From Octopus bimaculoides (lineage: Eukaryota): DNA of 64,000 nucleotides. This document shows, in pieces, positions 874-48,700 of the stretch (position 1 is the stretch's first letter; each line of letters begins with the position of its first letter). Location: assembly GCF_001194135.2 (NCBI RefSeq), contig NC_069004.1:12845533-12909532 (forward strand), read 5' to 3'. Below the pieces are notes generated by a model. It did not search any database, was not told the origin of the DNA, and saw only the letters and a program-made list of their open reading frames with translations. A program made the translations under genes and the position numbers.

Positions 874-3800
874 GTAAGTATCATAGTGTTTGTTTACTGA
901 GGTCTCTAGCACGCTGTGACCCCAAAACCTATAACTGAATAAAGTCTTCAGAATTAGCAGTTGTTGATGTAAAATGTGATGGGGAGAGGGCTAGTGATGT
1001 TTGTGGCATTAATCAGTGGTGGTGGTCATAGAACAATAAACTTTTTAGTGACTTGCACGCTCATATTGCATTCTTTGTACTTTCCAAAGATGTCAATTGT
1101 TTGATCTTATAATTATCTCCCTTGTGTGTTTTTTTTTTTAGATCACTGGTTCTCAGCCAGGATGCATATAAGATTTTTTGTTAAAATTTAAGAGCAATAA
1201 ATTGCTTATAATCCTACAATACATCAAATATTTTAACAATTTTTTAAAAATACAATTCCTAATGATATTTAATAATAAAAATATAACAGGATTTTTTAAA
1301 CATAATCTAGCTATGAGGGTTTGCTGGAGTAAAATAACTATTAAGGGTGGGGGCGGGCATAGATAAAATGGTTGAATACCATTGTTTTAGATCTTGAGCA
1401 GCCTTAGAATTTCTAACTAATTGCATGAATAATTTCATTTAATTAAAGATTATCAACTAAGAATATCACACATCCTGCAGTGTCTCACTACAAGTGTTTG
1501 CTAATAAATTTTATCCCAATCTGTTATTAGTTCATGTTATGCTGTCCTCCCAAATATCTTGGTGAATTGTTAGTCCATAAAATCCTACCACCACCACATG
1601 TCCAAGTATATCACTAATCTGTTATGTCACCTCATTCCTAGTATCTCTGTATATTGTTAGTCTGTTACGTCACCTCCAAATAATTTGATAAAAGTTTAAA
1701 TTGATGTTTGCGTTAGGAACCATTTTAGCACTTTTTAATTGGTTCTGTTTAATGGCAGTGTTCTCATGCAAAATACAGACATGTTTATTATTTGGTCAAA
1801 CTTATGGCCTGTATGTCCTTTTTGGTCTAAGACCTTTTTGATATATATATTTTGCACTCATTTACCCAAGTTGTTAGATTGTTTTTTATTCAAGAAAAAA
1901 ATTGTTAAATCATTTCCCTTCTGTTCTTTGCATGTGTTTTTGAAAAGAATCTAATGATAATTAATGAGAAAATTGCTTTATCCTACAAGCTGAATAATTG
2001 GTCAAGTGACTAAAGCGTTTAAAGGGTGATAGTGATTAAGAACCTGTAATATCCATTCTGGTATCATTGCATGTCTCTTCTTTCCTCACACACTCTAGGG
2101 GTTACTATCAGGCTTGCAATCTTAAGTTTTATTTCTCATGTTTCCTTCCATTATTTTGAGTGTCTCTTTTTTCCTTTTCTTTTTTTAAAATTTTTCCCCT
2201 CCTTTACCTTCTCCTCACAGGTACCTATGGTGTTGTGTATAAAGGACGCCATAAAAGAACAAATCGGATTGTTGCATTGAAGAAAATTCGGTTAGAGAGC
2301 GAAGAAGAAGGAATACCATCGACAGCTATCAGAGAAATCTCATTTTTGAGAGAAATGGTACATGACAATATTGTTAGGTGAGCATTTTAGTTGGGTTGAG
2401 TTATAGGGAGCATGCTATTGAGGGCACATGACTTGATGGTTAGGGTATTTGATTCATGATTGCAAGGTCAGGAGTTTGATTCCCAGCAGTACAGTGTGTC
2501 CTTGAGTAAGACACTTTATTTCACATTGCTCTAGTTCACTACTCTGCAACCTTTTCTCACTTTTCAAAATTCAGCAGTACACCTGAGCTAAAAATATAAC
2601 AATAAGTATAGGGGGAAAATTCTTACTGCAGCATACCTAGCATTGTCTCGTGGCACACGTGTGCCATCGCATATGGTTGCAGAGCACTGCTCTAGTCCAC
2701 TCAGCTGGCAAAAATGAGGTGTACTTGTATTCCAAAGGGCCAATGTTGTCATTTTTTGTCACATTGAATTTCCCTGAGAACTACATTAAGGGTACACATA
2801 TCAGTGGAGTGCTCAGCCACTTGCACATTAATTTCTTGATCTGATCAATTGGAACCCTCATCATTGTAAATAACACACAGTGCCAGCAATGCATTGAAGT
2901 ATCAGTAATGGATCTAGCTGGACTTCTGGTGGCTATTTTTTAATGCCTTTTATAAATATTTTTTTTAATTATTAAAAACTTGAATCTTCAAATTTTAGGC
3001 TTTTATGAACCATTTTTCAGTTTTGAGAAAAACATTTTTACTCCTAATTATTCAATGATTTAAGTCATTAAAACTTTTTTAAAATTCTTTCTGACTATTT
3101 TTGTAAATCCTGCTAAGGTTCCAAAGAGTTTTAACAGACACAAAGTTCATTTCTATTGCCATTAACAATAAATTTCTCCAATAGCTGTTGACAGCCAAAT
3201 GATATCACCAATTCTAACTTTGCTTGAATTATTCTCTCTTTACAATTGTCTACAATTTAAATCATTTGTGAATTATTAAAATAATTTATTTTCAGTTTAG
3301 AAGATGTCTTGATGCAAGAAGGAAAATTATATCTTGTCTTTGAATATTTGTCAATGGATCTGAAGAAATATATGGACTCTATACCAAGTGGAAAGTACAT
3401 GGACACTAAACTTGTAAAGGTATATTCTTTTATTGATTTTCATGATTTTGCACATATCAGGCAGCACTCCAGTTATCGTCGTCCTTTAAGGTCCATTTTC
3501 CATGCTGGTATGGGTTAGATGGTTTGACTAGGGCTGGTAAACCAGAGAGCTGCATCAGGCTCCACTCATCTGTTTTAGCTTGGTTTCTATGGTTGGATGC
3601 TCTTCCTAGTGCCAACCACTTCAAAGGGTGTACTGGATGCCTTTTACATGGCACTGGCAATGACCATGATTCACAGCAAATCACCAGGTCTTGGATAAAC
3701 TGCTTTCCAGACTTTCATTATTGAAGATAGCTTTATACTGTTGTGATTGATATAAGAGTGCTTGAGTAGAATTGTTTTTTCTTTTTTTAAATTCTGCACA

Positions 3801-6800
3801 TGATGTCCATCTCATTATTCAAAATAGAACCCTCTCAATCCCACATTTATTCATTTTTGGCTTACCTCAAGGTTCCATTATGTCTCCCACACCATATCTA
3901 ATCTACATCAAAGACCGGCTCACTGTTATCACTATCTGCTCCTGTGCACATCATACTCTTCATTGCCATCATTCTCACCTAGCCAACACACCTCCGACTA
4001 GACCCAGACACTACATCCATCAAGCAAACAGCACTACATCTGTCCTTTTCATAAGCAACTCACTGCTAAAACTTCTCTTTATAAATATTAAACCCGCATA
4101 ACCTTCCATAATGAATACATGGACAACATAGTTATGAGTGAAACTAGGCTGCTGTCTCTTTATGACTAGAAACTAGTTTTACTGTGAATAGTTGCTGAGC
4201 ATTATACAAACCCTCAAATATGTTCCACTTGGAATACACCTCGTATATCACAGACAGTACAAGAACTGCTGAATCATCCAACACATGGCTTATTTGACCA
4301 ATGGCTAGACCTTGTGAATATCCTATAATCGCCGGCAAGCTGTCTTTTCTGTAACAGTATCTTCTTCAAACTAGCATGTCTCCATCTAAAACCACACAAT
4401 GTACTTCGTTCCCCTCCCCCACTTGTACTTCGAGACTCTTTCTACACAATGCTTCCTTTCCGGAATGATTATACAAGAGACAGGAAGCATCTGTTAGTGG
4501 GTTAATGAGTGAAGGAGAAGTCATTGGTATGAGGAGCAGAGAATGATTGCATATGAACCGATGCACCTGTCTCAAATAAAGGAGTAGTACTCTAATGTAG
4601 AGTACAGTTGTACTCTGTATATGGTTAGAACGTCTTAAGAGCCAAAGTATTTACTTATGATTTAACCATATCGTTCTAACTATAATCCTGTAATTGTTCA
4701 GGGCAGGTTCTACTTGTGATATCCATAAGTAAAGAATATATACTTTTGTTGTTGTCCTGAATTATATAGTATGTTTATGGTGTTGAAGGAAATGAAGTTG
4801 TTACATCTCCATTACAAGTTGTTTTCTGAGTTCCTTTTATTCCTTCCTGTGGCTGAAGTAAAATATAGCATCTTATCCAGTTACATGTAGCACTAAGTTA
4901 TTAATGTAGAAGAGGAGGAGTACCATGGGCTTTTTTTTTAAATATTAGTAGCTATCGTTATTTATCATGGCTGGCAGAATCATTAGCATGCCAAGCAAAG
5001 TGCTTGGTGGCATTCAAATTCTACCAAGGTTAACTTTTCCTTTCATCCTTTCAGGGTCAATAAAACAAGTACCAGTTGAACACTTGGGGGGGGGGGATGT
5101 TATCGACTTACCCCCTCCCCCCAAAATTGTTGACCTTGTGCCAAAATTTGTAGCCATTATTAAGACATTGAGCTGGCAGAATCATTAGTGTCAGACACTG
5201 TGACTAACAGTATTTCTTCTGATTCATTATATTCAGAGTTCAAATTCAGCTATGGTCAACTTTGTCTTTCATCCCTCTAGTGCGGTCAATAAAATAAAAG
5301 TACCAGTAAAATGGCAAGCCGAGAGAATTGTTAGCATGGAGGGGAAATTGCTTAGCGGCATTTCATCCATCTTTATGTTCTGAGTTCAAATTCTGCTGAG
5401 GTTGACTTTGTCTTTTACCTTTTCAGGGTCAATAAAATAAGTATCAGGTGAGCACTAGGGTTGATGTAATCAACTTACCCCCTCTCCCAAAATTGCTGGC
5501 CATGTGCCAAAATTCGAAAACATTATTATTGTTATTAGAGTAGTTTGGATGGTAGGATTGTAGTATGTTAAATATTTTGTGTTATTTGTATTTCAACTTA
5601 TTGGTTTGCAGAGTTACCTTCATCAAATTCTGCAAGGAATTCTCTACTGTCACCAGCGCCGACTCCTTCATCGTGATCTGAAACCCCAGAATTTACTTAT
5701 TGATACATCTGGAACTATTAAATTGGCTGACTTTGGTTTAGCCAGAGCATTTGGTATTCCTTGCCGTGCTTACACTCATGAAGTAAGTTGGGTTTTTGTT
5801 TTTTTACGCATTTATTTTTTAACATTTTTATGATCTTCTGGAAGTTTCATTTTTCTTGACCTCTTACTACCAAATAAATGCAGTTAATTACTAACATTTC
5901 ATGGAGTTGTCTAACAAGCAAAAAGGTTTTCTTATTCAAAGAATTAGATCTTTCATTCAGTTAACTGCTCAAATATCAACCACAAACTTCATCTAGAAAG
6001 TTAATTAACCCTTTTGCATTCAGATTACTCTATCAAATGTAAAGCTTATTTATTCACATTGTTTTTGAATAAATTATGCATTATCTTATAGTGTTGAGGT
6101 TTTGATGATTATTTTTAGAATAACAGTGTAGGGTAGATGTGAGGAGTCAGATCTGGCCAGTTTTAAAATTAGATAAAGTATTTGGGTTGGATATGGCTGG
6201 TTAAAATGCTAAACAGTTAATGATTGCTTTATCTCATTTCTATTGAGGGAGTGAGGCTGTCTTTATTCCATAAAAGTATTTGAATTGTTTTTTTTTTTTT
6301 GTTAGGTTGTTACTTTGTGGTATCGTGCCCCAGAAATCCTACTTGGTTATCAACGCTATTCCACAGCCTTAGACATTTGGAGTATTGGTTGTATATTTGC
6401 TGAGATGGTAACAAAACGACCTCTTTTTAATGGTGACTCTGAAATTGACCAGTTATTCAGAATATTTAGGTAACTTTTCTCTTTTCCTCCTTTTATAATA
6501 TTACTTTCATTCTAGCAAAGTTTCTACGAGTTCTTGATATTTCAGTTGGTTGGATTATTGAGATATTGGATCAACTATTTCTCATGTTTTGATGATTTAT
6601 ATATCACAATTTACAATGGACTAGTCCTCCTGACTGGTCCATTGGTAGAATTCTCAAGTGCAATGTTAATATGGCTGGATATTCCTCGGTCAGTTTGGAG
6701 TGATAGCTACATCTGAGAGATGTTGTCTTAAAGAATGGTATAGTGGTTGTGCATTTGGCACAGGTGGTAGAAATGGTTTAGTCATTTATTACTGCCTTTA

Positions 6801-8428
6801 TTTACAGCATAACATCTGGGACATACACATTCTAAAATATTTGCAGCATTTTTCCTACAACACCATTGATAACATTAGCTGATTTACCTTTTATTGTATT
6901 TTGTGAATACATTAATTCATGAATGTAATCTTAAAATTTCCTAACCAGCTCTGTCAAGTGATAAACAATACAAGAAGGTTGTCATGCTGAAATATTCATT
7001 GACAACCTGGTTATTATTGTGGCTACTTGAGTCCTGAGTAAGAGGAAGACAAACCAAACAACTAGATATCACTCACAGATCTGCTGTTCCTCTGTAGCTG
7101 AGAGCTATTTACTTCATGCTTCAACATGTTGAATTGTGTAGCATGGTTTGTAACACTGGATATTATTTTATTTTCAAATGTGCAAATTCACTAGATAATA
7201 CTTTGGTTGTTATGTTGAAATATTCATTGATAACCTAGTTATCTAGAGCAGGGGTTTTCAAACTTTTTGACTTGCGGACTCCTTTATATTTCAGGCTTTA
7301 CCTTATGAAATTTATACGTGAATATTTGCTTAAAATAACATATATTTTTACATTTATTTATTTAACAGTATTTAACAAATAGGTTTATTGTCAATTAAAA
7401 GATTTCGATTAAAAAACATATATAAAATTAAATTGCCCATAAAAAGTATTTGCTGTCCACGGACCCCCCCCCCCCTGTCTTGTCCTTGCGGACCACAGTT
7501 TGAAAACCACTGATCTAGAGAATAACTTAGAGAAAGACAACCAAAAACAACTAGATGTCACTCACAGATCTTTTGTTTCTCTTAACCTGTTCCTCAGTAG
7601 CTGAGAGCTATTACTGTGCACTTCAACATGTTGAATTGTATAGCATGCTATGTAACATTAAATATTGCTTAATTTGAATTTTCACTAAATAACACTTAGG
7701 TAGAGGCATTGTTGCTTGGTTAAGACATTTGGTTTACAACCATGTGGTTTTAGGTTTGATCTCACTCTGTGACACCTTGGGCAACTATAATCTCAGGTTG
7801 GCCAATACTTTAGAAGTAAAATTTGATAGACAGAAACAGTATGGTAGCCTGTTACGTATTTATAATGTGTGGTTTTTATTTCTTCTGTGCCATCACATTA
7901 ACATTGCTCATAAAGAATGGTGAAATACAATATCTTGAAAATACATGATGCCTGGTATCGGGAACTGGCTATAGGATATTGTCTCCTCCAAGTCATGTCT
8001 GCATGAAATGAATAGGGAAAAAAAATGTAAAAACAATGAGTGTTTTTCAGTTCTGTTACTAACCATTCAAATGTGAAGTGGAGGTTGTCTTCTAAGTCAC
8101 ACAATTCATCATCATCATCATTTGCCTGTCTTCCATGTTGGCATGAGTTGGACAGTGTGGCAAACCGTAGGGCTGCACCAGGCTTTATTTTTCAATGGCT
8201 GTTACAAGGCTGTAGCCTGAGGTTTAATTTAAGCTATTATCTTTTACTTGTTTCAGTCATTTGATTGTGGCCATTCTGGGGCACCACCTTGAAGTATTTT
8301 TTACACGTATGACTTGACCCCAGTATTTATTTTAAGCCTGGTACTTGTTCTATCCGTCTCTGTTGCCGAACCGCCAAGCTACACAGATGTAAAGATGCCA
8401 ACATCAGTTGTCAAGCAGTGGTGGGGGA

Positions 8429-8471
<43 letters not shown>

Positions 8472-9067
8472 ATACAATGGGCTTCTTCCAGTTTCCATCT
8501 ACCAAATCCACTCACAAAGTTTTGGTCAACCAAGACTATAGTAAAAGACACTTGCCCAAGATGCCTTGCAGTGGGACTGAACCCAAAACCATGTGGTTGG
8601 GGAGCAAGCTTCTTACCACACAGCCACACTTGCACTTAATAGATATGATGTTCATGCTTTTTTTTTTATTATTATGCAGGACTTTATCAACCCCAAATGA
8701 AGAATCTTGGCCTGGAGTAACAAATTTCCCAGATTACAAAGCATCTTTCCCACAGTGGAAAGTCAACAATTTGGAAACAGCTGTTAAAACTGATGTTGCC
8801 ATGGAGTCTGCTGGTCTTGATTTGTTACAGGTCAGTGTGCAATGAGATTTTCTTTGATGATGTATTTTTGTTGGCGTGATTAAGATTGGATCAAAGTCAA
8901 TGACAGCAAGAGTTGCCGTTCTTTCTTTGGCTACACATGAAGTAATACATTGAACCTCAGTTTTTCTACCAAAATATTGTCTGCACCGTAGAGATAGTTT
9001 CCCTGACAGACCAACAAGGTTAAGCTTCTCACTAACAGTGAACTTAAAGTATCTCTGTATGTATGTA

Positions 9068-18565: not shown

Positions 18566-18655
18566 ATGTCACAGTTATTGTTTGTTGAAGATGTTCGAAG
18601 TTGGGAGTCAACAAAATGTCAGCAGGAACTGAACTGCGCTCTCCCAAAGCTTGTT
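18566..18655 (+). CDS. FIRRM: FIRRM exon 1
   Basis: MSQLLFVEDVRSWESTKCQQELNCALPKLV; donor gtatcc. Confidence 0.82.
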
Positions 18656-21600
18656 GTATCCTTTAGTTTTCATGAAATTTAACACAGCTATTTAACTGTG
18701 CTGATATAATCAGTTGATTTTCTATGATACTTAATTGAAAATGTATTCACATGCAAAAGCTTGAAAGAAATGATGCTAGCATACTCCACTGGATGTACAA
18801 TGCCAGTGTGCACGTCTTAGAAAAATTGGGTATATGATACATCAGATTTGGTGTGCAAGAGAGAAGACCATGCTGGTATGAACATGTTATGCGTATGTAT
18901 GAGGACAGCTGCGTAAAAAGTGTCAACCTCTAATTATGGAAGGAACCTGTGGAAGAGGTAAACCCAGGAAGAAGTGAAACAAAAGTGGTGAAATATGATC
19001 TTCAGTTGTTGAGTCACATGGAGGCAATGACAAGTGACTGAGACTTCTGGCAATTTGCTGTGCTTGAGGAGACAATGTCAGCCTAAGTAAAATCGTGGTT
19101 GTAGCCAATGCTGGTGACATGTAAAAGACACCCAGCATACTCTGTAAAGTGGTTCGCATTAGGAAGGGCTTCCAACCATAGAAACCAAGCTAAAACAGAT
19201 GACTGGGAGCCTGGTGCAGCTCTCCGACTTATCAGCTCCAGTCAAACCATGCAACCCATGCCATTATAGAAAACAGACATTAAATGATGAAGATCATGAT
19301 GTATTCAATTATGTTGGAATTTAGTCACTGTTGAGGTGGTGGTGACTCAATTGGTTCAGAGCTAAAGGGAACTCTCGGAATAAAATGGCATAGAGTAATA
19401 GCTGTATGCCACATTTACATATGTTTCAAAGTAAATGTGTATTCTGGAACTGATATTTTCACAGCCTAATATTTTTCATCCTCTGTGATACCCCCATTTA
19501 TTTTCCTTAATTTACTTCAGTCCTGCTTTTCTAGTGATATCGGTGTTGATAGTAAAGTTGGTAAGTAAAATATTTTGTAGTGTTTAGTCAGTTCTTGTAG
19601 TTGCCAACTGGTAGTTAGTTTCTTGAGCCCTGAAAGGTAAAGTTAAACCCAGTGCTGGGTTTGAACTCGGAACAGAATAGGAAGTAACTAAATATCTCAA
19701 AATATTTACCTGATACTCTACTGATTTTCCCAACACACTACGAGCTGGTATCAAAAAGTTGTTGTTTATACATCCATCCATCCCCCCACTTTGGGCTACC
19801 CCATTACTTTTCTTCAATAACCCCTGGATCTGTCCACTCTCCTTAGGGGTAGGGCAGTACTACCCACTTAGGGAACCACTGAATTAGCTTACATTTATGA
19901 GAAAAAAAGATGTGTTTTTCTTCTTTTATTTCTAAGTTTCTATGATTTCATGTTTATTTGGTTCTTTTTTTTCAGGGGTTTTGAATATTATTTGTACATC
20001 ATTTCTGCCTCACATGAAGCTTGCTGCTATTGAGACAAGACTCTTTCACAACATAAGTTCAAAGGTAGGGGATTTAGTAGCATTTCATAAAATTGAAGGA
20101 GCAACTCTACCCAACTGATTAGGGGGCCATTTACTTTAAGTTTGTTATCTATCCCAATTTCTTTGACCTTTAAACATTATCAACTCTAAATGCTTATCAT
20201 ATAATAATCATTTCTTTCAGTTTGACTAATCACCAGCAGAAGCAGCAGAAGGTTATATAATCTGTAATTGTTTCTCATTTCAAGATAAAAAGAAAATTGC
20301 TGTTTCCTGTAATTCTTCAAAAATTATTCAATGTTTTCAACCTTCTATAATTTATTTATTTTTCTTTTGGTGAAGGATGGGCAACACACACACACATATA
20401 TATATAACACATGCACCAGTGTTTGTGCCACATAAACAGCACCCAGTCCACAGCTGCCTTTAGTAGAGTCCTCTCTATGTTGCAAGTATTCAAGGAAGGT
20501 CTCTGGTCTAAGTGCAATTCGCCTCCTTAGTGTCTGCTTCCCTGAAATAGATTTTGACTGCTGCTCTTTCTCTTGTGTTAAACCACAAAAAATGCATCTT
20601 TTCTAGGGACCAGCATCTTAACTATACTATAATTAACAATATAATAATAACACTGTGTGACAAAATTTTTATTTTTGTCTTTGGTCAGTAAGTGCTATTT
20701 CCTGTTTGCTTCTATCTAAAAATCAATAGAAATAACTACTATTCCCTTCGAATTTTGCTTTTTGTCACCTGGGTATCAATGTTTTGAAACTGACCTCTTT
20801 CCCATTACATTTCAGACAGATTCAGTGCTGAGTTGCTGAAGCAGAAATATCATTATAGCAAATATTCAGCTCAGTACTACATATTTGCTTGTCAGTTGCT
20901 TGACCTTAACCACATGAGTATGTCCCTTAGTGGCTGACAATATGTGCATCTCAGATCATGAGCAAGAGTAGTTGGGGAACATCATAGCCATATGTTGAGA
21001 GGGATTCTTTTGGGGTTTGAATAAATGTAAAAAAAGCAAAGTCTGAAGGAAATATCAACCATTTTCCATACTTTCTAGGGGTAAGCAAGTAGGAAATAAC
21101 TGTTGCTACCCAAGGAAAAAAATCATATTACACAGTGTAATTAACTACACTATAATAATTAGCTATACTATAATTAGTTTAATAACAAAATTATTATTCC
21201 ATTTCTTGCCAGTATTAAAGGTAAGATATAAATTACTTTACAGTTTACCAAAAAAACAAGATTTAGGGTTTTGAAGAATTACAGTCTCCTCACATTTTGC
21301 AGAAGACAGAGTTTCATTTATTCCCTTTGGAATAGTAGAAATATTGTAATTTCCAATTCCTTATACATTGAAAATTACAAAGCCTAATTGAATATTTTGT
21401 CTGTGTTCCAGATAAATGATTTGTTGGCAGAAATATTAGAAAATGCTAAGCAAATTCTTCAAGAAGTTACAGAAAAGTCATCTGAATGCCACCAAGAGGT
21501 TGTGGCTATGCTGAAGGTAAGTTTCCAATATATAATCAAAAGTGGCGAGCCAGCAGAATCGTTAGCGTGCTGGATGAAATGCTTAGTGGTATTTTGCCCA

Positions 21601-24600
21601 TTTCTATGTTCTAAGTTCAAATTCCACTGTGGTCAACTTTGCCTTTCTTCCTTCAGGGATCAATAAAGTAAGTACTAGTTGAACACAGGTCAATGTAATT
21701 GACTTATCCCCACTTCCCCCAAGCTGCTCTTGTGGAAAAAATTTGAAATAATAACAATAACAATTATTATCATTATTATTATTATTACTACTACTACTAG
21801 ACAAGCAGAAAAACACCTCATGGTATTTGTTTTGGTTCTTTAACTTCTATGTTCAAATTCCAAATTGGTCAAACTTTTGGGGTTGATAAAATGAGTACCA
21901 GTTTAATATTGGAGTCCATTTAATAATTAGTGCTGATCCCTTAAATCTAAGACCCTATATTTATGTTAAAAAGTCTTTTTTTAATTAAATTTTTTTTTTA
22001 TTTTTATACATTATTCACATTCGATGGATATTTGTCCTCATCTTGTTTGTTGTTAACACAACGTTTCAGCTGGTATACCCTCCAGCCTTCTTCGGGTGTC
22101 TTGGGGAAATTTCAAACCTGGGTTCTCATTCCTAAGGTATTTTGGGGATTAGTGGTTAATTCCAAGCAGTGACCTGAACAATGATAATAATACTAATAAT
22201 AATAACATCGAAAAATACCTTAGGAATGAGAACCCAGGTTCGAAATTTCCCCCAAGACACCTGACGAAGGCTGGAGGCTATATCAGCCGAAACGTTGGGT
22301 TAACAACAAAGATGAGGACAAATATCCGTCGAATGTAAATAATGTACATAATTCCTCATCTCTTGAATACAGAACTGTATTTTTATTTTTATTTTGTATA
22401 TTAACAGCTTGCTGTAAATATTGTGGAATCTACAGAGAGTTGTATGAAATATGTGTGTGGAGCCAGTGAACTTGTCGACTTGGAAAATATACATTCCTTG
22501 CTCTCCTCTGTCCTCAGAGTTTTAACACAATCTTATGAACATTGTAAGGTAAGTTCAGTTTAATTAAATATTTCTAGGGTTGCAATGTTCTGCAAAGTTT
22601 GAGCAAGATGCTCCATTCTAACACTAACTAATCAGTTGAGAACTGAGGATGACCCCTGCTTTTTAGCTAAGTTCACTGAAGTATGCCAAGGGTTATACCT
22701 TGTGTTTGCTTTTAGCTGAGTTTGAAGTATTATGGCAGTTAAAAGTCTTTCATTTGTACCAATGTTGATGGCCAATGTCTTGTAGGAGAGGTTTCAAAAT
22801 TATTGTGTATGGTGAAGGCATGGTTTTGTAGATATGAAGGCGTAGATGTGGCTGTGGGTAAGAAATTTGTATCCCAACCCCATGGTTATGAGTTCAGTCC
22901 TACTGTGTGTCACTTTGGCCATGTATCTTCTATTCTGGCCTCGGACTGGCCTAATCCTTGTGAGTGAATTTGGTAGGCAAAATCTGAAAGAAAACCATCA
23001 TGGGTGTATATCAGTGTGTCTCCTTATCTTCACATTGTGTGATAGTTGTAAATGATTACCACTGTCATACAAGCAGTGTAATTCATTTCCAGTATTTTGC
23101 AAAAACATGTCTGGGCATGGAAAAATGTTACCCTGCTTGGAAACAGGTGAGGGTGGTGACAGAAAAGGCAAGTACAGAAAAGAGAATATTAAAGCAATTG
23201 TATTTCAAAGGCCCCTGAAAAATTTTGCTTTAGATGTATGTATTGGTATGTATTACAAGAAACAGGTTCTTTCTCAAATGTTTTACATAGTTCAACCCAC
23301 ACAAGTGAATGTGTGAAAAAGGAAAATAGTAATTTCGAAAGAAATGTCTATAAAACTAATTTCTGAACATAGAATGGCTATGGGGGTCCACCATAATAAA
23401 ATAGTAATCAAAGGGGTCCGTAGATAAAAAAATGATTGATTAAAACAGAATAAACTATACCTCGACACATGCTTGTTTCTGATTATTTTTATGCATAGCT
23501 TAACAAAGCTATAATATTGATAATGACATATATATATATATATATATGTCTTTTACTTGCTTCAGTCATTAGACTGTGGCCATGCTGGAGCACTGCATTG
23601 AAGGAATTTTAGGTGAATGAATTGACTGCAGTATTTATTCTAATTTATTTTTTAAAGACTGAGGATTATCCTATCAGTCTCTTTTGTCGAATATGTGAAT
23701 ATTAGCTCTTTTATAAATAGCTGACATTCCTAAATGACAACTACTGAAGTATGATGTAGAAGAACTAGACTTCTTTTAATGATATTAACCATGTCTGTGT
23801 AACTGAAATATCCTCTACCATTTGTTCCAGGAGAGTCCTACCATTTATGGTAACCTGTTGCCACTTTTATCTGATGTTTTGTCCAGTTTTTTCAAAAAGA
23901 CTCACCAACTACAAACTGTAATTATTGGTTTATCTTTTCTCATATGATTTCTAAAATTCATTTAATCTTTCAATGTTACATTCTTGTAATTGTAGAGATA
24001 AACTCTTCAAACACTTTCAACACTGACAATTACTACATGACTGATATTTCTCTTTAATTTCTAATCCATTAAGATTAAATGCAAATTTTCCATCACCAGA
24101 TAAAATGCTAATTTAACAGATAAATTTCCCCAAACACTAAGGGTATCTTCTCATTTTGCAATAATTGGAACTAGTAATACAGCTTAGTGTTTTACTCAAG
24201 ATACACAGGCATGGCCCAGTGTTTAAGAAGTTTACTTTTTAACCATGTGGTTTTGGGATCAGTCCCACTGACTGGCACCTTGAGCAAGTGTTTTCTACAG
24301 CAGCTCTGGGCCAACCAAAACTTTTGAGTGGATTTGGTAGATGGAAACCTGTTTGAGTGTATATGTGTGTCTGTCTGTCTGTGCATGTGTATGTGCATGC
24401 AAAGATGTATTTGTTTTTGTGTAACTTGGGTAAATGTTGTAAATGGATATCATAACCATACAAGTGGTGTCTTTCATTCCCAATCTTCTGTAAAAACATG
24501 TCTGGCCATGAAGAAAACATCTTGCCTGAAAATATATAAGGGTTGGTGACAGGAAGGGTATCCAGTTGTAGAAAATCTGTCTCAGTGTGTCCCCTCTGGC

Positions 24601-26950: not shown

Positions 26951-29449
26951 NNNNNNNNNNNNNNNNNNNNNNNNNNNNNNNNNNNNNNNNNNNNNNNNNN
27001 NNNNNNNNNNNNNNNNNNNNNNNNNNNNNNNNNNNNNNNNNNNNNNNNNNNNNNNNNNNNNNNNNNNNNNNNNNNNNNNNNNNNNNNNNACACATACATA
27101 CATACAGATGCAGGCATGGCTGTTGCTTCCTAACCACATTGTTTAGGTTCAGTCCCATTGCATGATGTCTTGGGCAAGTGTGTTTAATTATAGCCCTGGA
27201 CTGACTAAAGTCTTTTGATAGAAACTAGAAGTTCATTGTGTATGTATAAATATACATGTGTGTGTGTGTGTGTGTGTATCCCAGCAGGATATATAAAGGT
27301 CCATAGAAACAAATTTCATCTAACCCATGCAAATAGGGATTAGTGGACATTAAGTTAGTGATCTGATTATATATGTGTGTGTGTGAGAGTGTGAATGCTT
27401 GCATTCTGTGTTGAGCTGAGCTATGGATAGTAATGCTGGTTGTCATTTCTCTGCCAAGAAATTGGTCCACTAGCTATGTTTTCTAAAACAAGTGGAAGGT
27501 GCATTTGGCTGTAAAATGATGCCTTGATAGTATGAATTCATCTAACTCATGCAAGTATGGCAAAATGGATGTAATATGAATAAACAAATATGTATTATCA
27601 CTTGGTCCCAGAAGAAGGCAGTGTTAAGAGCTGCTAAAAATGAAAATCAAATTGCTGGTCTACCTGAGGTTTCAGTTGACTTAGATCAATATTTTAGTTA
27701 ATATATGGATGTAGTAAATGATGCTATTTTAGCATCATGTCTTATCTGGGTACTGAAACAATTAAATACCTATTGTGGGGATGACTAATGCTCTGGCTGT
27801 AGGTGCTACCAATAAGTCTTAGAGGTGGTAATTATAGGTATTGAGGTTCATTATGAACAGAAGTTACAATGGAACTTTAATTATGGCACAAATTAATTTA
27901 GTTGATTGACAATAAACTAATTATATTTCTGTTAATTATTGAAGCTGACAGAGAATTGCACCAACAACAACTGTTGTTTTTGAGCTTTATCGTCATCATC
28001 ATCATCATTCAGGGATCAGTCCTACTCATTTAAGATGTTTCAATCGTGACCATCCCATCTATTTCCGAATTATAATAATGCTTGTTGTATTTTGTAAACT
28101 GTTCAACATAGAGCATCTCATCGTTTCTTTTCAGCCTGCCACAGTTTGTTGTCTCTCTGCCAACTGGTTCCAGCTCTTGACATCAAGATTATGATTGGTC
28201 TATGGAAGTCTTTAGCCAGGTAAATGTTTTATTTGCCACTTCGGTGTTTAATGTGAAAGGAAGGGAATAGATGCAGTCAACAAAAACAGTTGCATTGTTT
28301 TAGCTGATTAACCCTTTAGTATTCAGATTAATCTGTCAAATGTAATGCTTATTTATTCACATTGTTTTGAATTATTCAGGTTCAAGAGGGGTGTCCACAA
28401 TATTTGCTTGTAACTTTGTCAATATCGAGCTTCTTAATGAGTCCAAGACATTTTAAGTGATTTTCAATTGTTGTGTATGATACATTTAACCTTTCTGCGA
28501 TCTTTTGCACAGTTATATGACCATTAGATTCAATTATGGCTTTGATCCGGTCATCATCAACTTCAGTATGTCGATCAGAACGTTGGTCATCTTTGAGTGA
28601 AAAATCTTCTGTGCAGAATTTTTTAAACCTTTTCTGACATGTGCCTTCTGTTAAGCTATCAACACTATAAACTTCACATATCTCTTTGTGAGCCTCAGCA
28701 GCTTTCTTGCCTTTACGGAAATAAAAAAGCAAAATATGGTGAAAATGTTCACTTTTGCACTCCATGTTAAAATTGACACTAACAGCTGTAAACAAAATTA
28801 CATGCAATTTGTTTCTGAAGCTTAAAGTAATGGTTATCAAATGTCAAAAGGAAAAAAATTCATAATATTGACAAAGTCATTCGGTTGGACGGTTTGACAG
28901 GAACCAGCTAGGTGGAAGATTGCACCAGGCTACTGTGTCTGTTTTGGCATGGTTTTTACGGCTGGATGCCCTTCCTAACACCAACCACCCTGTAGAGTGG
29001 ACTGAGTACTTTTTACATGGCACTAGCATAGGCGAAGTCAGCTTTGGCATGGTTTTTACAGCTGAATGCCCTTCCAAATGCCAACCACTTCACAGTGTGG
29101 ACTGGATGCTTTTTATGTGGCACCAGCAGGGTCACCAAGTAACTTGCAAGACAAGGAATTATATATGTGTGTGTGTGTGTGTATATACATATGTCTTGTC
29201 TCAGCACCACAGCCTTTATTTTGTTTGTATACTCACTCTATAAGGTGGTTGATGTTAGGAAGGGTATCCAGCCATATAAACCCTGCCAAAACAGACAGTG
29301 AAGCCTGGTGCAGTTTTCTGCCTATCCAGCCCCTGTCACACCGTCCAACCCATGCCAGCATGAAAAACAAACGTTAAATGATGATGATTCACATTTATGT
29401 ATTGCATTTGCTTTTGTCACTCTCCTCACCATTCAATTGCTATTGCCAG

Positions 29450-29486
<37 letters not shown>

Positions 29487-32400
29487 ATTCCTTGTCTTGC
29501 AAGTTACTTGGTGACCCTGCTGGTGCTGGTGCCACATAAAAATTATCCAGTTTGCATTGTGAAGTGGTTGGCATTTGGAAAGCCATACAACTGTAAAAAC
29601 CATGCCAATATGATCGTTAAAAGTGTGACATTGTAATGAATTTTGGTGGAAAGTTTTAATTTAGATCACTTCAAGACAAAGTTTGTATCCTGGAAATGGG
29701 CAGTTTCAGGCAGATTGGTATCAAAATGGTTAAACATCTATGCTTTTCTTTTTCTTTTTCCTCACAGGCTGTCCGTCCAGTACAAAAGTTTTCTTTATTC
29801 AAGACTCGAACTTGAAGCTATCATGTCTTCTTTGGTCTCCAGTATTCAATCAAATTATGACACCTTGTTAAATGTGGCACCCCGGGTTCCAGATGAGACG
29901 GTTGAAGTAGGTAAACTTTCATGAATTTTCAAATGCTTACTCTCTCTCTCTCACTCTCTCTCTCTCTCTCTCTTTCTCACACACACACACTTTCTGTTCT
30001 ATGTATGTATGTGTCTATATATATATACATACGTGTGTATATGAAAGATGAATCATGATTGAGAGAATGACTGGAATTTAAAGGAGTTGGAAGATATAAG
30101 CAGGAGAAACCATTCTGCTGGTATGGGAATCTGATGGGAATGGTTTGATGAAAAATGCCATAATTGGCACAGGCGTGGCTGTGTGATAAGAAGTTTATTT
30201 CACAACCACATGGTTCCTGGTTCAGTCCCACTGCATGGAACCTTGGGCAAGTGTCTTCTATTAAAGCCTTGGGCCAACCAAAGCTTTGTGAGTGGATTTG
30301 GTAGATGGAAACTGAAAGAAGCCTGTTATATATATATATATATAGATAGATAGTAGATAGATAGATAGATAGATGTGTGTGTCTTTGTGCCTGTGTTGTC
30401 CCTCACTACCACCACCACCACTTGACGACTGGTGTTGGTGTGTTTACATCCCCATAACTTAGCAGTTCAACAAAAGAGCCTGATAAAATAAGTACCAGAC
30501 TAAAAAAAGTCCTGGGGTTGATTCTTCTACTATAGCTTCAGGCTGATGAAAGCTTTGTGAGTTGATTTGGTAGACAGAAACTGAAAGAAGCCTGTTGGGT
30601 ATATACACATATATTTATGTTGTGTGTGTCTGTGTTTGTCCACCACCACTGCTTCACAACCAGTGTTGGTGTGTTTACATCCTTATAACTTAATCGGTTT
30701 AGCAAGAAACCAATATGATAAGTACCAGGCTTAAAAATCATAAGTTTGGGGTCAATTCATTCGACCAAAAATTCATCAAGGTGATGCCTCAGCATGGCAA
30801 CAGTCTATTGACTGAAACAAGTATTTAAAAAAAAAAACTATCAAACAAGCAGTGTTTTTCATTTGCAATCTTCTGTGCCCAGCAGCCTTTGCACTGGTTG
30901 TGCCTGAAGGACTTGGAGAAATGTTACCTTCCTTGAAAACAGATACCAGGAAAGACATGTAGAATGCTTTTCCCCTTATTGACTGACACTGTAGAAAATG
31001 TCCCAACAACTTCCATGCAACAATGAAAGAAAAAAAGTCATCGGAGGGGTGATGGATACCCTGCAATCACACAAGGATAAAATTTAATTAAAAAAATATA
31101 TTTCAGACGAATTCATATGTCAACAAAATGACATCAAGAGTTATTTCCCCTGCATATAATTTATGCATATGTAATAAAGAAAAAAACATTTTGATTCACC
31201 CATCTGCTAGTTTTGAAGATGATCCAACCAAAATGTAATGAGTTCAAGCCACTCACCCGATGAGTGTTTCTGCCAGATTTGGTGAAAATCCGTTCTGCCA
31301 TTTTCCAGTAATTTTGCAAACACACAGACAGACAGACAGACAGACACATGCAGGGTAATGAAGAAGTGGACATCAAACTGGTCCTGATGAGGTCAAACAA
31401 CTGAAGCTGAGGTTTCCTTTAATCGGTGCTCACAGTTTTACCATTTCACTTATTAAAAACTGGTCATGTTTCTAAGTCAGTATTTCCTGTATTAACCAGG
31501 TAATACTGACTTGTTGTACCCTGCTGGTCACTATGCACTTCCAATTCTTTCTTGTAATATATTTTTTTCTATTTTCCAGGAAGAAAATCCTTCACAAACA
31601 AATGAGAAATCTTTTCAGATGACTTTGAAGATAACTGGTTTCTTAATGAAGGTTTTGGTAAATTTCGTCAAAGAATATGAAAATTACCTTGGCAAAAGTG
31701 CTGAATCATTATACCCCCTGATTCTCTACATGTTTAAGTAAGTCATTTGAGGTGAATTCTCACCTGTTCATCATCATCATCATCATCATTTAACATCCAT
31801 TTTCCATGCTGGCATGGGTTGGACAGCTTGACAGAAACTGGCAAGACCAGGAGCCACATTAGATTCCATGCTCTATTTTGGCTTGGTTTCTACGGCTGGA
31901 TGTTGTACCTGACAGCAACCACTACACGGTGTGTAGTGGGTGTTTTTTATGGGGCACCATCACTAGTACTGGAAGAATTTTATAGTGGATTGACCCCAGT
32001 ACTTTTTTTTTTTTTAAGCCTGTTGCTTATTGTATCAGTTCTATTGCTGAACCGCTAAGTTACAGGAACATAAACACACCAATACCAGTTGTCAAATGAT
32101 AGTGAAGAACAAACACAGACACAAAGACGCACACATATACAATGGACTTCTTTCAGTTTCCATCTACCAAGTCCACTGACAAGGCTCTGGTTAGCCCGAG
32201 GCTATAGCAAAAGACACTTGTCCAAAGTTCCACTCTGTGGGACTGAACCCATAGCCATGTGATTGGGAAGAAAGCTTCTTACCATACAGCCATGCCTGTG
32301 CTTATAAATTATATTTTTTTTTCTTTTAGGTTTTCTCCTCCTTCTCTCGCTGCTCCAAAACTTATTGAACAAAGTCAACGAGATATCCAGATCCAGTTAT

Positions 32401-44061: not shown

Positions 44062-45693
44062 TGTGTGTGTGTGTGTTTATGAAGGGTTGGGGTGAGAATA
44101 TTTCTTATACTAAAATTGATTAAAACGTTTTATTCTTAAAGATATTTATCCATTGGATGGCGTTAGGAAGGGCATCCAGCTGTAGAAACTCTGCCAGATC
44201 AGACTGGAGCCTGGTGTAACCATCCGGTTCACCAGTCCTCAGTCAAATCGTCCAACCCATGCCAGCATGGAAAGCGGATGTTAAACGATGATGATGATGA
44301 TGATCACAGTCATGACTTCTGAGGACATTAAGCAATGGATACAGTGAAAAAGTGGCCATCAGGAATTGATCTTAGACCACATTCTTAGGTCTGCTAGGAA
44401 CTTAATCCTGCTGTTGCCCAATGTGTGTGTGTGTAAGGCTTGGCTGTGTGGTTAAGAAACTTACCTCCCAACTAGATGGTTGCAAGTTCACTCCCACAGT
44501 GTGACATCTTGGGCAAGTGTCTTCTACTATACTCCTGAGCTAACCAAAGCCTTGTGAGTGAATTTGGGAAATGCAAACTGAAAGAATTCCATGTCATATT
44601 TATCTGTTTGCCTTGTGATTGCATAATAATTGCAAACAGGTGTCACCATCCTACAAGAGGTACTGCTGTTTGTTTTCAGCCTTCTGTAAAAACACATCTG
44701 ACCTGGAGAAATATTACCTTGCTTGTAAAAAGGTAAGGGTTGATGACAGGAAGAGCATCTGGCTGTAGAAAATTTGTCTCAACAAATTCTGCCTGACCCA
44801 TGCAAGCATGGAAATGTGGGCATTAAATTGACAATGATGATATAATTGTCAGAGACCTAAACTTTGCATTATTACAAATTTTCAGTATAATCAAAATAAA
44901 AATCTGTAAAATGATTTTAAAAAAAAATTCTTTATTTTTAGGTTTCTGCGAAAATGGGGTCCACTTTTCCAAAAATATTTCAACATTTGCTCTTTGATTC
45001 TAACAGTCTGCTCCATCACCAGGCTATTGAGGCATTTGCCTCATTTGCCCAGGAGACCAACTGTGAGTCTCTGGTTCCACAATGTCTTCTAATGTCAAAT
45101 TCTACAAAAGAAATAATACTTCAGGACACTGCAATAACTTTTCTAAATCATGTAAGTAAACTTCTTTCTTCTTTTATTGCAAAGGAAGAATTATTTGGCT
45201 TCTGTGTAGAAGATATTAAATCTGTCTGAGCCTGGGTTGTTGTTTAGCCCCAATTTGGCTTTGACCAAGTAGACACTATGATCAAACGGGTTCCAGCTAT
45301 GCCCACCTCATAAGTTACATATGAATAACAAACAATAAAGCTGCTGTATTCCACACTTGTAATTCACCCCTACCAATAAAAATATTTCCCCCACCCCCTA
45401 CTGAAGGAGATTTCCTTGTGAACTGTGTTGTTTGGGGAGCATAGACTTTTATGTTCAGTGGATTGTGGCAACTTCATTAGTGGTGGTCAGTAGATCTGAC
45501 CAGCCTGGACACTGTATATATGGTGTGCATATATGTATGTGTGTGTATATATACATACACACACATTGGTTTGTAAAAAAGAATTTTTTGTTTGAATCAA
45601 TTCAACCATGATACTTTCATGATGTCTTTTATAAGCTTCCAGTAAATGGAAGCTACAACTTGGAATGGTCTCACTTATTGTCAAAGTACCTAT

Positions 45694-45759
<66 letters not shown>

Positions 45760-48700
45760 ATACATATATACCACACACAAACACACACTGTTATAGTATC
45801 TTTATCTGTAATACTCTACCCTGACCTTTTCACCCTGGTAAATTGTACATCGTGACTAATTAGTGGTTTACAATTTCATTGCAGACGGCATACAGCTGTG
45901 ATGGTTTCAAGCAGGCCAAATACCTCTCGTCTCAAAGACTTATCATCAATGAAGATTTTGTGATTGCTTGGAAACCAGAGCAAAATAAAAAACAGCAACC
46001 TGAAGATAGTCCAGAAGATTTATTGAAGGTCAGACATATTTCCAATTTACCATCACTTCCACCACCACCACCACTACCACACTTCTACCATCCTCATCAC
46101 CATCATAGGTTCTTTCACATATTATCATGAAGAATGATATACAATACAACATTAACTTTTGCACATCTCAGTACAGTTTCTGTGATGTCCAATCTTCACG
46201 AGTTTGTTACATCTGTTGATACAATTGTAGTTACATTATATTAATGATATCTAGAGATGAGGGCAAGTGGGTCATAGAGAGTCCACTACAGTACTATTAC
46301 GCTATGTTGGTTTCAAATTTTGGCACAAGACCAGAAATTTTGTGGGAGGGGCTGAGTCAATTAAATCAACCCCAGTGCTCAACTGGTACTTATTTTATTG
46401 ACCTTGAACAGATGAAGGGCAAAGTCAAACCCAGCAGCAATTGAACCCAGAACACAAAAAAGGACGAAATGCTAACAATTCTACCGTCTTACTGCCTTTA
46501 CATTAAGATGGTAGAATTCTACCGACTTTCTGCCTTTACATTAAGACGGTAGAATTCTACTGCCTTGCTGCCTTTACATTAAGACGGTAGAATTCTACCA
46601 TCTTGCTGCTTGTATATTAATGCTATCTAGAGGCCACACCAGTGCAAATTACTCTGTTAACATTTAATGTATGGATCATTAAAAATTTACAATAATATTT
46701 AGTTAAAAAAAATAAATGGTAAAGACCCCCTTCAATCATGAATGACCATGAGATTATGCCTAGAAAGTTCCCCTCCAAGGCACAAGTCTGGGCAAGGTTT
46801 CTTATGGAAGACCAGCAGTGGCTCATGCATGGCAGTCTCTCGTCTCCATGCCACCAATGTTATCCAAGGGAAAGGCAAAGGCCAATACAGCTTGGTACCA
46901 GTGACGTCGCAACTTATTTCTACAGCTGAGTGAACTGGACTGATGTGAAATAAAGTGTCTTACTCAAGAACATAACACACAGCCTGGTCTAGGAATCGAA
47001 CTCACTACCTCATGCTCTAACCATTGAGCCATGTACTGTGGTTACTAAAATAATATTTGTTATCCCAAAAGATATGTAACTTCCTTCCACTTCTCCAATG
47101 ACATTGCTGCAAATCACTCAATGTATAGAAATGTATATTTGTTGGCCAGAAAAAAATAGAATTGTTTAGAAATGAAATAATTTTGACATTTCATCAACAT
47201 TGGAAACAATACTTCAACGGATGTCAACACATTTAATACAGCAACCAGCAGTTTAACCCTGTAGCACAGGGATCCCCAAACTTTTTAGACCATCGACCCC
47301 TTCATGGAATCTTTGACCCCCCTCATCCACCACTGGGTGTGTACAAGAAAATAAATAATAATAATATTAATTAAGTACAGTTCTATATTTAAGAGATGGG
47401 TAATTATGTACATTATATACATTTGATGGATATTTGTCCTCATCTTGTTCGTTGTTAACACAACGTTTCAGCTGATATACCCTCCAGCCTTCATCAGGTG
47501 TCTTAAGGAAATTTCAAACCTGGGTTCTCNNNNNNNNNNTTAACACAACGTTTCAGCTGATATACCCTCCAGCCTTCATCAGGTGTCTTAAGGAAATTTC
47601 AAACCTGGGTTCTCATTCCTAAGGTATTTTTCAATGTTGTTGTTGTTGTTCAGTTCACTGCCTGGAATCGAACTCAGAATCTTGGGGTTAGTAGCCCACG
47701 CTCTTAACCACACTACACCATATGCCCATGGCGACCCCTGCTCTAAACTTAGTTGTAGTCTTAATAAAATTTGTTCTGGAAATGTTTAAGAAAATAGAAT
47801 TTTGTTTTATTTCAGGATCAAGAAACAACAGTTGAGGCTCAACACATGTCAGATACAGAATCTGAGGAGGTAAGATACATCAGTTATTATCTTTACATTT
47901 AATGTAGAAAGTATAGCGGTACAAGAGCTACAACTTTTGAAATGGTGGGATGCTTCAAGGTTTAAACATTACTTCAGTGAGTACCCAATGGTATGATCAA
48001 TAAAATATAGGTAAGGCAGTGGTTCTAATCCTTGTCACTACCAATTACCCCTTTCTATTAAAATGAATTCTCCCATGGACCCCAAACTTTTTAATGTTTT
48101 TCTACTCAATTCATTTTATTACTTTTCCCATTTTCATCTTAACTGAAAGATATTAATTACAAGCACCCATGCCAGTACCATGCATAAGCACTCATGCTGG
48201 TGCCACATAAAACACACCCAGCACACTCTGTGATTGGCATTAGGAAGGGCATCTAGCTGTAAAAACCTCGCCAAATCAGACTGGAGCTAAATCAAAATCA
48301 ACCTAGCCAAATCAAAAGGCAGTGAGCTGGCAGAAGGGTTAGCATGCTGGGCGAAATGCTTAGCGGTATTTCATCTGTCTCTATGTTCTGAGTTCAAATT
48401 CCGCTGAGGTCGGCTTTGCCTTTCATCCTTTCGGGGTCGATAAATTAAGTACCAGTTACACACTGGGGTCGGTGTAATCGACTTAATCCCTTTGTCTGTC
48501 CTTGTTTGTCCCCTTGTGGGCAATGAAGAAATAAGACTGGAACCTGGTGCAGTTCTCTTGCTATCCAGATCTGGTCAGACCGTCCAACCCATGCCAGCAT
48601 GGAAAACAGAGCTTAGATGTTGTTGATGATGATGATGATGAATAATTAGTGGGTAATAAAACAGTTTACACTGAACACATGAGTAGTGCCATCTTAGTGG

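Follow-up and report, generated by a model that had tools for sequence, protein, structure and literature searches.

Can a hammerhead ribozyme motif that arrived with a repetitive element just upstream of a coding exon influence the transcript of its host gene, or is it a remnant that the gene tolerates? This question is raised by a locus in Octopus bimaculoides, where two copies of a short element stand head to head in an intron of a FIRRM (C1orf112) family gene. The window, i.e. the whole 64,000-nt stretch analysed here, covers positions 12,845,533 to 12,909,532 of contig NC_069004.1 (assembly GCF_001194135.2, forward strand). Its base 1 corresponds to CM046624.1:12,845,533, which places the inverted pair at about 12,867,539-12,867,911; coordinates below are window positions unless stated otherwise. 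An initial annotation of this DNA had proposed that the pre-mRNA alternates between a ribozyme and a long hairpin. We arrive at a different view. The plus and minus copies are most likely an inert insertion scar that would fold into a long RNA hairpin, without a working switch. As to its origin, the scar is probably the fossil of a composite insertion of a non-autonomous retroelement resembling short interspersed nuclear elements (SINEs), generated in one event of the type known from Penelope-like elements (PLEs).

Two element copies in head-to-head orientation

The inverted arms initially annotated at 22007-22143 on the minus strand and at 22211-22346 on the plus strand are real, as a repeat search, blastn and RNA folding agree on them. 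The repeat search returned three co-linear blocks, 22002-22051/22302-22351 at 88%, 22038-22112/22244-22318 at 85% and 22103-22143/22212-22252 at 98%. In the arm-to-arm blastn comparison, 22212-22346 matched 22143-22007 with 90.6% over 138 columns (E = 2e-49), and a global alignment of the arms gave 93.3% over 134 aligned bases. The RNA of 21995-22360 was predicted to fold into a single long hairpin of -214 kcal/mol (z = -24 versus 100 shuffles). The inverted repeat exceeds chance by far.

The two copies are of unequal length. According to its alignment to the plus copy and to a second locus in the window (copy B, see below), the minus arm (22008-22143, minus strand) is truncated at both ends: it begins exactly at the start of the element body, without head and linker, and ends about 33 nt before the family 3′ end. 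It is separated from the plus copy by GGGG (22144-22147), the junction of two 5′-truncated copies, which lies outside the homology of either of them. The plus copy (22148-22379, plus strand) is truncated 5′ within its tRNA-like head, with loss of box A, is complete to the family 3′ end ...AGAACTGTA and is co-linear with copy B. Its initial segment (22148-22210, plus strand), which forms the hairpin loop in the RNA, consists of the 3′ third of the head with a decayed B box (GGTTAATTCC) and an (AAT)n linker. This segment aligns locally to positions 19-76 of the copy B head with order and orientation kept (blastn, 81% over 32 nt). Hence, the 67-nt spacer between the arms (22144-22210) cannot be described as scrambled remnants of a tRNA head, as had been done initially; it is a co-linear part of the plus copy, made up of the 3′ third of its head and the (AAT/AAC)n linker, with order and orientation as in 47376-47745. 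At the opposite end, a tail of about 33 nt (CATAATTCCTCATCTCTTGAATACAGAACTGTA, 22347-22379, plus strand) occurs in the plus copy and in copy B and is missing from the minus arm. The 3′ end sequence of the element is ...CTCTTRAATAYAGAACTGTA, and clear family homology stops at 22379, in accordance with the earlier delimitation, 28 nt before the exon at 22408.

Both copies together make up a composite of 372 bp that is bracketed by a 13-nt direct repeat. Its left copy, TTTTTATTTTTAT, is located at 21995-22007 and its right copy, an exact match, at 22380-22392; the repeat is a candidate target-site duplication or a T5A-rich target tract. A repeat of at least 13 nt was obtained in only 0.3% of 2000 composition-matched shuffles of both flanks (p about 0.003), which, given the low-complexity sequence of the repeat, is supportive but not conclusive. 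No direct repeats were found flanking either arm alone.

Copy B (47376-47745, minus strand, antisense to FIRRM) is the sole other family member in the window and served as the full-length reference. It consists of a tRNA-like head, an (AAC)n linker, a body with an intact minimal hammerhead ribozyme (min-HHR) motif and the tail. Within the head, an A-box-like TGGTGTAGTGTGG and a B-box-like GAGTTCGATTCC are about 40 nt apart. Copy B and the plus copy share their sequence through GAACTGTA and continue into unrelated AT-rich flanks; an A-rich or simple-repeat 3′ tail common to both loci, as the sign of a long interspersed nuclear element (LINE)-type or poly(A) tail, was not found. The flanks of copy B contain only a marginal 9-nt repeat (p about 0.06), and the 5′ end of the family is thus poorly defined. 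The pairwise identities among plus copy, minus copy and copy B all fall between 92.5 and 93.4%, a star-like pattern. The evidence on the family comes from these two loci with three independent copies. The family is sparse: the ~64 kb of the window contain two loci, and another ~94 kb of Octopus DNA contained none. No further copies were present in four other cephalopod loci that were scanned, and pattern scans with the hammerhead box and an invariant body box returned none from metagenome, viral and prokaryotic collections.

An apparent tandem hammerhead dimer within copy B at 47462-47582 was rejected as an assembly artefact. It is due to a perfect 75-nt duplication across a 10-N scaffold gap (47530-47539, flanks 47455-47614), an uncollapsed contig overlap with 75 identical nt on each side. 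Two further stretches, 22839-22895 and 63440-63492, weakly resemble this tRNA-like head (70-73%) and are probably the heads of other tRNA-derived SINE families.

The host gene and the adjoining exon

The host is an annotated gene of 939 aa with the Pfam domain DUF4487 (FIRRM/C1orf112 family), encoded on the plus strand and beginning at 18,566. A DUF4487 match above the Pfam cutoff was obtained for the window open reading frame (ORF) at 44,954-45,229, and a tblastn search with the cephalopod FIRRM ortholog P0121 (932 aa) yielded about 20 co-linear plus-strand exons between 18,566 and 50,083. The coding exon adjoining the element (22408-22548, plus strand, at about CM046624.1:12,867,940-12,868,080; 141 nt, phase 0/0) is a single open frame bounded by the acceptor cag|CTT and the donor AAG|gtaagt. 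It matches residues 108-154 of P0121 with 53% identity (tblastn, E = 3e-11), and its ortholog in Argonauta hians (locus position 24,228-24,368) has identical boundaries and 62% amino-acid identity. The upstream neighbouring coding exon (21412-21516, plus strand), also detected by tblastn, joins it in frame, leaving an intron of 891 nt (21517-22407, plus strand) as the host of the element.

At the sequence level, the gene, its strand and the exon 22408-22548 are confirmed. The initial annotation had called this exon number 5. While gene, exon and strand were correct, the number could not be verified, as tblastn gives it as the fourth coding exon and an extra untranslated or very short exon would be required to make it the fifth. 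Protein homology searches with the exon peptide and with the concatenated exon peptides returned no matches, although Octopus proteins are in the database. We do not count this result against the exon because the P0121 tblastn match and the Argonauta ortholog confirm it. A sequence search of the PDB produced noise only, an exact look-up of the window ORFs around the element found none on record, and a scan for sigma-70 promoters and terminators was uninformative, being irrelevant to a eukaryotic intron.

A single insertion event as the probable origin

In the scenario we favour, one Penelope-type retrotransposition would have placed the 372-bp unit in a T-rich tract at a distance of 15 nt from the downstream acceptor AG. 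The inserted unit would have consisted of the 5′-truncated sense copy 22148-22379, its 5′ end abutted by the more truncated inverted copy 22143-22008, and a pre-insertion site ...TTTTTTTTTTATTTTTAT-TTTGTATATTAACAG with one copy of the 13-mer would be expected. As source elements both copies are dead, the plus copy for want of box A and the minus copy for want of the whole head. A single event is supported by the presence of the 13-nt repeat around the composite and its absence around the single arms.

PLE insertions are characterized by an inverted 5′-truncated copy that abuts the 5′ end, an extension of 30-40 bp at one end only and a bias for simple-sequence targets (Craig et al. 2021, PMC8557442), so that the initial annotation rightly considered such a partner typical of them. 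The octopus composite resembles them in all three traits: its minus arm abuts the 5′ end of the plus copy, the 33-nt tail occurs on the plus copy only and the target is simple sequence. It differs from them in that it has no ORF and no partial tandem of the pseudo-long terminal repeat (pLTR) type and is only 372 bp long. Pairs of min-HHRs on opposite strands, 100-700 bp apart, are also on record (PMC4209133). We favour one PLE-type event because of the inverted 5′-truncated partner, the one-sided tail, the simple-sequence target and the lack of a shared A-rich or LINE-like tail. No reverse transcriptase ORF related to the element was found among the window ORFs.

Alternatively, the arms might stem from two independent insertions. 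An older copy would then have received a second, inverted copy of an abundant SINE at its 5′ end, and the head-to-head arrangement would be coincidental. Such a history would fit the fact that the arms are no closer to each other than to the unlinked copy 25 kb away, and inverted repeat pairs are frequent in the window. We nevertheless consider it unlikely. The flanking 13-nt repeat belongs to the composite and not to either arm, both copies are cut off exactly at their common junction, and the low density of the family makes chance abutment improbable.

A LINE-driven origin would likewise involve a single event. The element would then be a tRNA-derived SINE with the hammerhead-like box as a passenger, and its inverted 5′ segment would be a product of target-primed reverse transcription involving twin priming or a template switch. 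The topology of the composite is indeed like that of L1 5′ inversions, which were reportedly described by Ostertag and Kazazian in 2001 as an inverted 5′ segment followed by a direct 3′ segment within a flanking duplication. The minus arm and the left flank also share a short microhomology (TA/GTA) at their boundary, which would be in line with this mechanism. However, twin priming gives different parts of the template, whereas both arms here span the same ~136 nt, and two templates or re-copying would be needed. Moreover, the two loci have no A-rich or simple-repeat 3′ tail in common, and the one-sided tail of ~33 nt is a trait described for PLEs. Together, these points make a LINE-driven origin quite improbable.

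A minimal hammerhead motif in the plus copy

The plus copy contains a minimal type I hammerhead motif at 22256-22301 (plus strand) with an intact core and a predicted scissile bond at 22296|22297. The initial reading of this motif, CUGACGA...GAAAC-GUU with one helix I mismatch and in sense orientation to the FIRRM pre-mRNA, was correct. The core boxes are CUGACGA (22261-22267), an extra A (22268), GAAA (22289-22292) and C-G-U-U (22293-22296). They are framed by the helix I strands 5′ GACAC (22256-22260) and 3′ GGGUU (22297-22301), while the 6 bp of helix II are formed by GGCUGG (22269-22274) and UCAGCC (22283-22288). The conserved positions C3-U4-G5-A6-N7-G8-A9...G12-A13-A14, the A15.1-U16.1 pair and H17 are found in the plus arm; copy B has CUGAUGA...GAAACGUU.

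The copies differ in their helices. Helix I of the plus arm consists of a G-C pair, a G x A mismatch (G1.2 x A2.2) caused by a G at 22,298 that is U in the other copies, and three further pairs, and it passed our motif descriptor only when one mismatch was allowed. Helix I of copy B has five contiguous pairs (GACAC/GUGUU). The closing pair of helix II is G10.1-C11.1 in the plus arm; in the minus arm and copy B, CpG decay has turned it into G.U. A loop is absent from helix III; the palindromic ACGU occupies 15.2/16.2, and GAA-ACGU-U is found in all copies. When two copies were cofolded, the ACGU boxes paired only inside larger non-native duplexes. The motif of the minus arm (22055-22100, minus strand) is inactivated: its core CCGAAGA (22095-22089) carries the U4C change for which it was initially judged probably dead, its helix II is closed by G10.1.U11.1, and it fails the descriptor. 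Its orientation in the FIRRM transcript is antisense anyway.

The descriptor demanded both core boxes, a helix II of at least 4 bp, U16.1-H17, paired 15.2/16.2 and a helix I of at least 4 bp. Its matches in the window were the family copies only, and none was obtained in 300 dinucleotide-preserving shuffles (64 kb, both strands). The min-HHR class of PLEs has type I topology without helix III or loop 3 beyond the conserved nucleotides (Cervera & de la Pena, PMC4209133). Four hallmarks distinguish this class: one nucleotide stays unpaired between A9 and G10.1, the G10.1-C11.1 pair is conserved, 15.2/16.2 are palindromic, and helix I is as short as 4-5 bp (PMC4209133). All four recur here although unplanned, the unpaired nucleotide being A22268 and the short helix I being uninterrupted in copy B and broken by the mismatch in the plus arm. 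Judged by sequence and geometry, the motif belongs genuinely among the minimal hammerheads.

Could the CUGANGA...GAAAC box be a chance resemblance in the body of a SINE that never was a ribozyme? About one match to the loose pattern CTGANGA-N(8-38)-GAAAC is expected by chance per window. Furthermore, the three independent copies provide no compensatory covariation; across helices I and II there are two one-sided pair-preserving changes and one disruptive change. Rfam detected nothing in the whole window at the gathering score, and at E ≤ 10 it returned from both loci only spurious miRNA-hairpin matches to the inverted repeat, and no tRNA; its hammerhead models (Hammerhead_1/3/II/HH9/HH10) gave no score at this threshold on either locus. 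This null result is expected because the motif lacks helix III, and it counts against canonical membership, not against the minimal class. Set against chance are the complete absence of the full descriptor from the shuffles and the presence of traits it did not demand, namely a 6-bp helix II and, in the copy least affected by CpG decay, G10.1-C11.1, both in keeping with published min-HHR families of PLEs. A fortuitous box is therefore very improbable.

Two further candidates were noticed. A CTGATGA...GAAAC occurrence at 30543-30581 fails the full descriptor and was rejected as a chance match. At the Argonauta hians locus (6980-7012, minus strand), a different sequence fits a relaxed descriptor, CUGAAGA-G-GUUGCA...UGCAAC-GAAACAUU, with a 6-bp helix II, G10.1-C11.1, a 4-bp helix I and non-palindromic 15.2/16.2. 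This could be a second motif of the PLE type or a fortuitous resemblance.

Ribozyme or hairpin in the pre-mRNA

In the FIRRM pre-mRNA the arms would form a hairpin stem of about 135 bp closed by the 67-nt loop. As the sole sense hammerhead would be buried in this structure, no self-cleavage is to be expected. Transcription produces the antisense arm first, and the first 41 nt of the plus arm, 98% complementary to it, would find this partner before the hammerhead segment is made. For this 46-nt segment, the ribozyme-competent fold was calculated at -7.2 kcal/mol, a local misfold in which the CUGA box pairs with GUUGGG at -17.8 kcal/mol and the duplex with the antisense arm at -69 kcal/mol. A second sense copy was not found on the plus strand of the window, copy B being antisense. 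In vitro, min-HHR monomers are inactive and dimers of sense copies weakly active (PMC4209133). Self-cleavage at 22,296|22,297 is unlikely under these structural models because helix III cannot close in cis, there is no second sense copy and the activity of min-HHRs is weak.

The switch of the initial annotation, in which the pre-mRNA would fold either into the sense hammerhead or into the long hairpin and would thereby be cleaved or have its downstream splicing modulated, draws on a plus copy that keeps all core nucleotides and G10.1-C11.1 in sense orientation 112 nt from the acceptor, and on sense intronic hammerheads known in amniotes (as cited in PMC7761336), but it is highly improbable in view of a helix III that cannot form in cis with zero loop nucleotides, the single sense copy in the transcript, a G x A mismatch at 1.2/2.2 just one pair from the cleavage site, the inferior stability of the ribozyme fold with the antisense arm made first, the low in vitro activity even of dimers, and the absence of the element from Argonauta with the same exon boundaries, so that it is not needed for exon definition.

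With the composite regarded as an inert hairpin, the most likely consequence for the transcript would be A-to-I hyper-editing of the intronic double-stranded RNA (dsRNA). The part of the initial annotation that concerned ADAR was reasonable in that the arm hairpin, as modelled, is a plausible textbook ADAR substrate. Among the species surveyed by Porath et al., O. bimaculoides showed the strongest hyper-editing, for which neighbouring inverted repeats were held responsible (PMC5625713). The inference is generic, however: at least 10 other inverted-repeat pairs (within 2 kb) exist in the window, some of them more perfect, and the hairpin property is therefore ordinary for this gene. Inverted repeats with 96-100% complementarity in or near FIRRM are located at 38651-38785/38811-38945, 29120-29182/29464-29526, 57996-58091/58398-58493 and 16515-16644/16902-17028.

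Several points weigh against a single PLE-type composite insertion that ended as an inert hairpin. The 13-nt repeat, a low-complexity T5A sequence, could be a pre-existing microsatellite. The copies are equidistant, and their divergence is no proof that the arms arose together. That the hairpin forms, that it is edited and that the transcript stays uncleaved are inferences. The tRNA-like head was missed by ARAGORN at default settings and by the Rfam tRNA model, and at a threshold of 70% ARAGORN reported a weak pseudo-tRNA only and nothing credible; the silence of the Rfam hammerhead models belongs here as well. From two loci and three copies, the ends, the consensus and the covariation of the family are poorly defined. 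Finally, a PLE reverse transcriptase or a pLTR with a matching 3′ end was not found in the ~180 kb examined, and for this reason mobilisation by PLEs is argued solely from resemblance.

Splice acceptor and branch point

The remaining T-rich tract with the acceptor (ttaacAG, 22393-22407, plus strand) and the right repeat copy 22380-22392 form 28 nt of non-element sequence before the exon. Under the model of a 13-nt duplication, these 28 nt (TTTTTATTTTTATTTTGTATATTAACAG) would be host sequence regenerated by the duplication, and the left flank (...TTTTTTTAATTAAATTTTTTTTTTATTTTTAT) would read like an earlier, upstream part of the same pyrimidine tract. The duplication would keep the 28 nt as they were before the insertion, and this would explain why an insertion so near to the acceptor was tolerated.

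The initial annotation had suggested that the branch point may derive from the element. The yUnAy matches at A22,385 and A22,391 are at a normal branch-point distance and lie in the duplicated host segment, while the best element-derived match, CUCAU with A22,358, is 50 nt upstream. By sequence match, a branch point in the 28-nt host or duplicated segment is at least as likely as one in the element. The O. vulgaris (OX597837.1) and O. sinensis (CM016882.1) loci reached through CDK1 extend to about 3.4 kb before the intron; O. vulgaris FIRRM begins at about 25,151,856 and runs toward lower coordinates, which would put the intron some 3-6 kb below, and in O. sinensis it would lie downstream of 14,429,577. 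No homology to the family was found in the orthologous Argonauta intron. Since the element is absent there and the exon boundaries are identical, it was not part of the ancestral definition of this exon.

The Argonauta intron (locus position 23130-24040) is almost entirely a minisatellite of ~32-nt CCTACCATAGACCCCCTGAGAGCTATTGTA-like units. A separate observation concerns the antisense hammerhead box at 22060-22070 (plus strand), in which CUGAAACGUU reads as AACGUUUCAG, giving an acceptor-like site TTTCAG|C after a pyrimidine-rich stretch. Antisense copies of the family could offer cryptic 3′ splice sites.

Comparison with known elements and possible significance

The motif shares with the min-HHRs of PLEs (PMC4209133; review PMC7761336) the core, the loopless helix III, the palindromic 15.2/16.2, the unpaired nucleotide, G10.1-C11.1 and a helix I of 4-5 bp, which in the plus arm is interrupted by the mismatch. 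Like it, these are mostly dispersed single motifs, sometimes pairs on opposite strands, and are expected to act only as dimers. Its helix II has 6 bp plus an 8-nt loop, whereas 7-8 bp are typical of PLE min-HHRs, and it sits in a short tRNA-headed element, in contrast to the pLTR next to an ORF with reverse transcriptase and GIY-YIG (RT-GIY-YIG) in PLEs.

The SINE-like retroposons Sm-alpha and Sj-alpha of Schistosoma (Ferbeyre 1998, Laha 2000, as cited in PMC8490949) are likewise short and non-autonomous, combining an RNA polymerase III (pol III) or tRNA-like 5′ part with a type I hammerhead that requires a dimer. Sm-alpha is often arranged in tandem, and its hammerhead is canonical, with a short helix III and contacts between the loops, whereas the octopus motif is of the minimal variant and true tandems are absent. 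Metazoan non-LTR retrozymes (PMC7761336; bioRxiv 10.64898/2026.07.22.740005) are also non-coding, bear hammerheads and are proposed to borrow the PLE machinery. They form head-to-tail tandems, an arrangement not found here, and circular RNAs after double cleavage, whereas the octopus locus has a head-to-head pair with one live core. Intronic inverted Alu or SINE pairs (PMC526178, PMC5625713) resemble the locus in having inverted copies in one pre-mRNA and long, nearly perfect dsRNA; yet, Alu pairs are independent neighbours, while the octopus arms probably arrived in one insertion.

By these features the motif belongs with the PLE minimal hammerheads, and the whole element is most like Sm-alpha/Sj-alpha and the PLE-dependent retrozymes. 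It differs from both in its minimal variant, the lack of tandem organisation and the PLE-type foldback insertion. Our literature search found no paper linking a ribozyme to an octopus SINE, no min-HHR reported from octopus and no cephalopod family of this kind.

We regard the locus as probably neutral and a role in regulation as improbable. What it offers is a pointer to a short repeat family in octopus that combines a tRNA-like head, a Penelope-type minimal hammerhead and the Penelope-type insertion geometry. In addition, the insertion amounts to a small natural experiment on 3′ splice-site tolerance: with its T-rich tract duplicated, the acceptor accommodates 372 bp placed 15 nt before the AG. 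A family-wide view would be conceivable in which PLEs drive octopod SINE-like elements and foldbacks add to the dsRNA and hyper-editing load of octopus. One may go further and picture an octopod tRNA-headed SINE of the pol III type that is mobilised by PLEs, uses the min-HHR in its own life cycle and makes "self-neutralising" foldback insertions, a proposal to which we give little credence at present. If this proposal held, the SINE would be a cephalopod counterpart of Sm-alpha, octopus genes would receive ADAR substrates from a defined source, and the partnership of PLE and SINE would be analogous to that of LINE and SINE. If the insertions were self-neutralising, the hairpin would loop out the 372-nt insert and be hyper-edited, and insertions could thereby persist 15-30 nt from acceptors.

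Other features of the window

Exons with 100% identity to the CDK1 genes of both O. bimaculoides and O. vulgaris are located at 2160-8845 on the plus strand, and the O. bimaculoides CDK1 locus (GCA_001194135.2, CM046624.1:12,836,357-12,866,150) corresponds to window positions 1-20,618 at 100%. CDK1 and FIRRM are same-strand tandem neighbours in O. bimaculoides, O. vulgaris and Argonauta hians. Remnants of mariner/Mos1-type transposases were recognized at 28382-28840 (minus strand; HTH_48, E = 2.7e-17) and at 56343-56627 (plus strand). An open frame of 154 aa at 59955-60419 (minus strand) resembles an exon of a SET-domain-type methyltransferase, with no Pfam match at E ≤ 1. Another open frame, at 63688-63903 on the plus strand, resembles the C-terminal part of a LINE ORF2 (...GVQWYGYAFRR...) and is unrelated to the hammerhead element.

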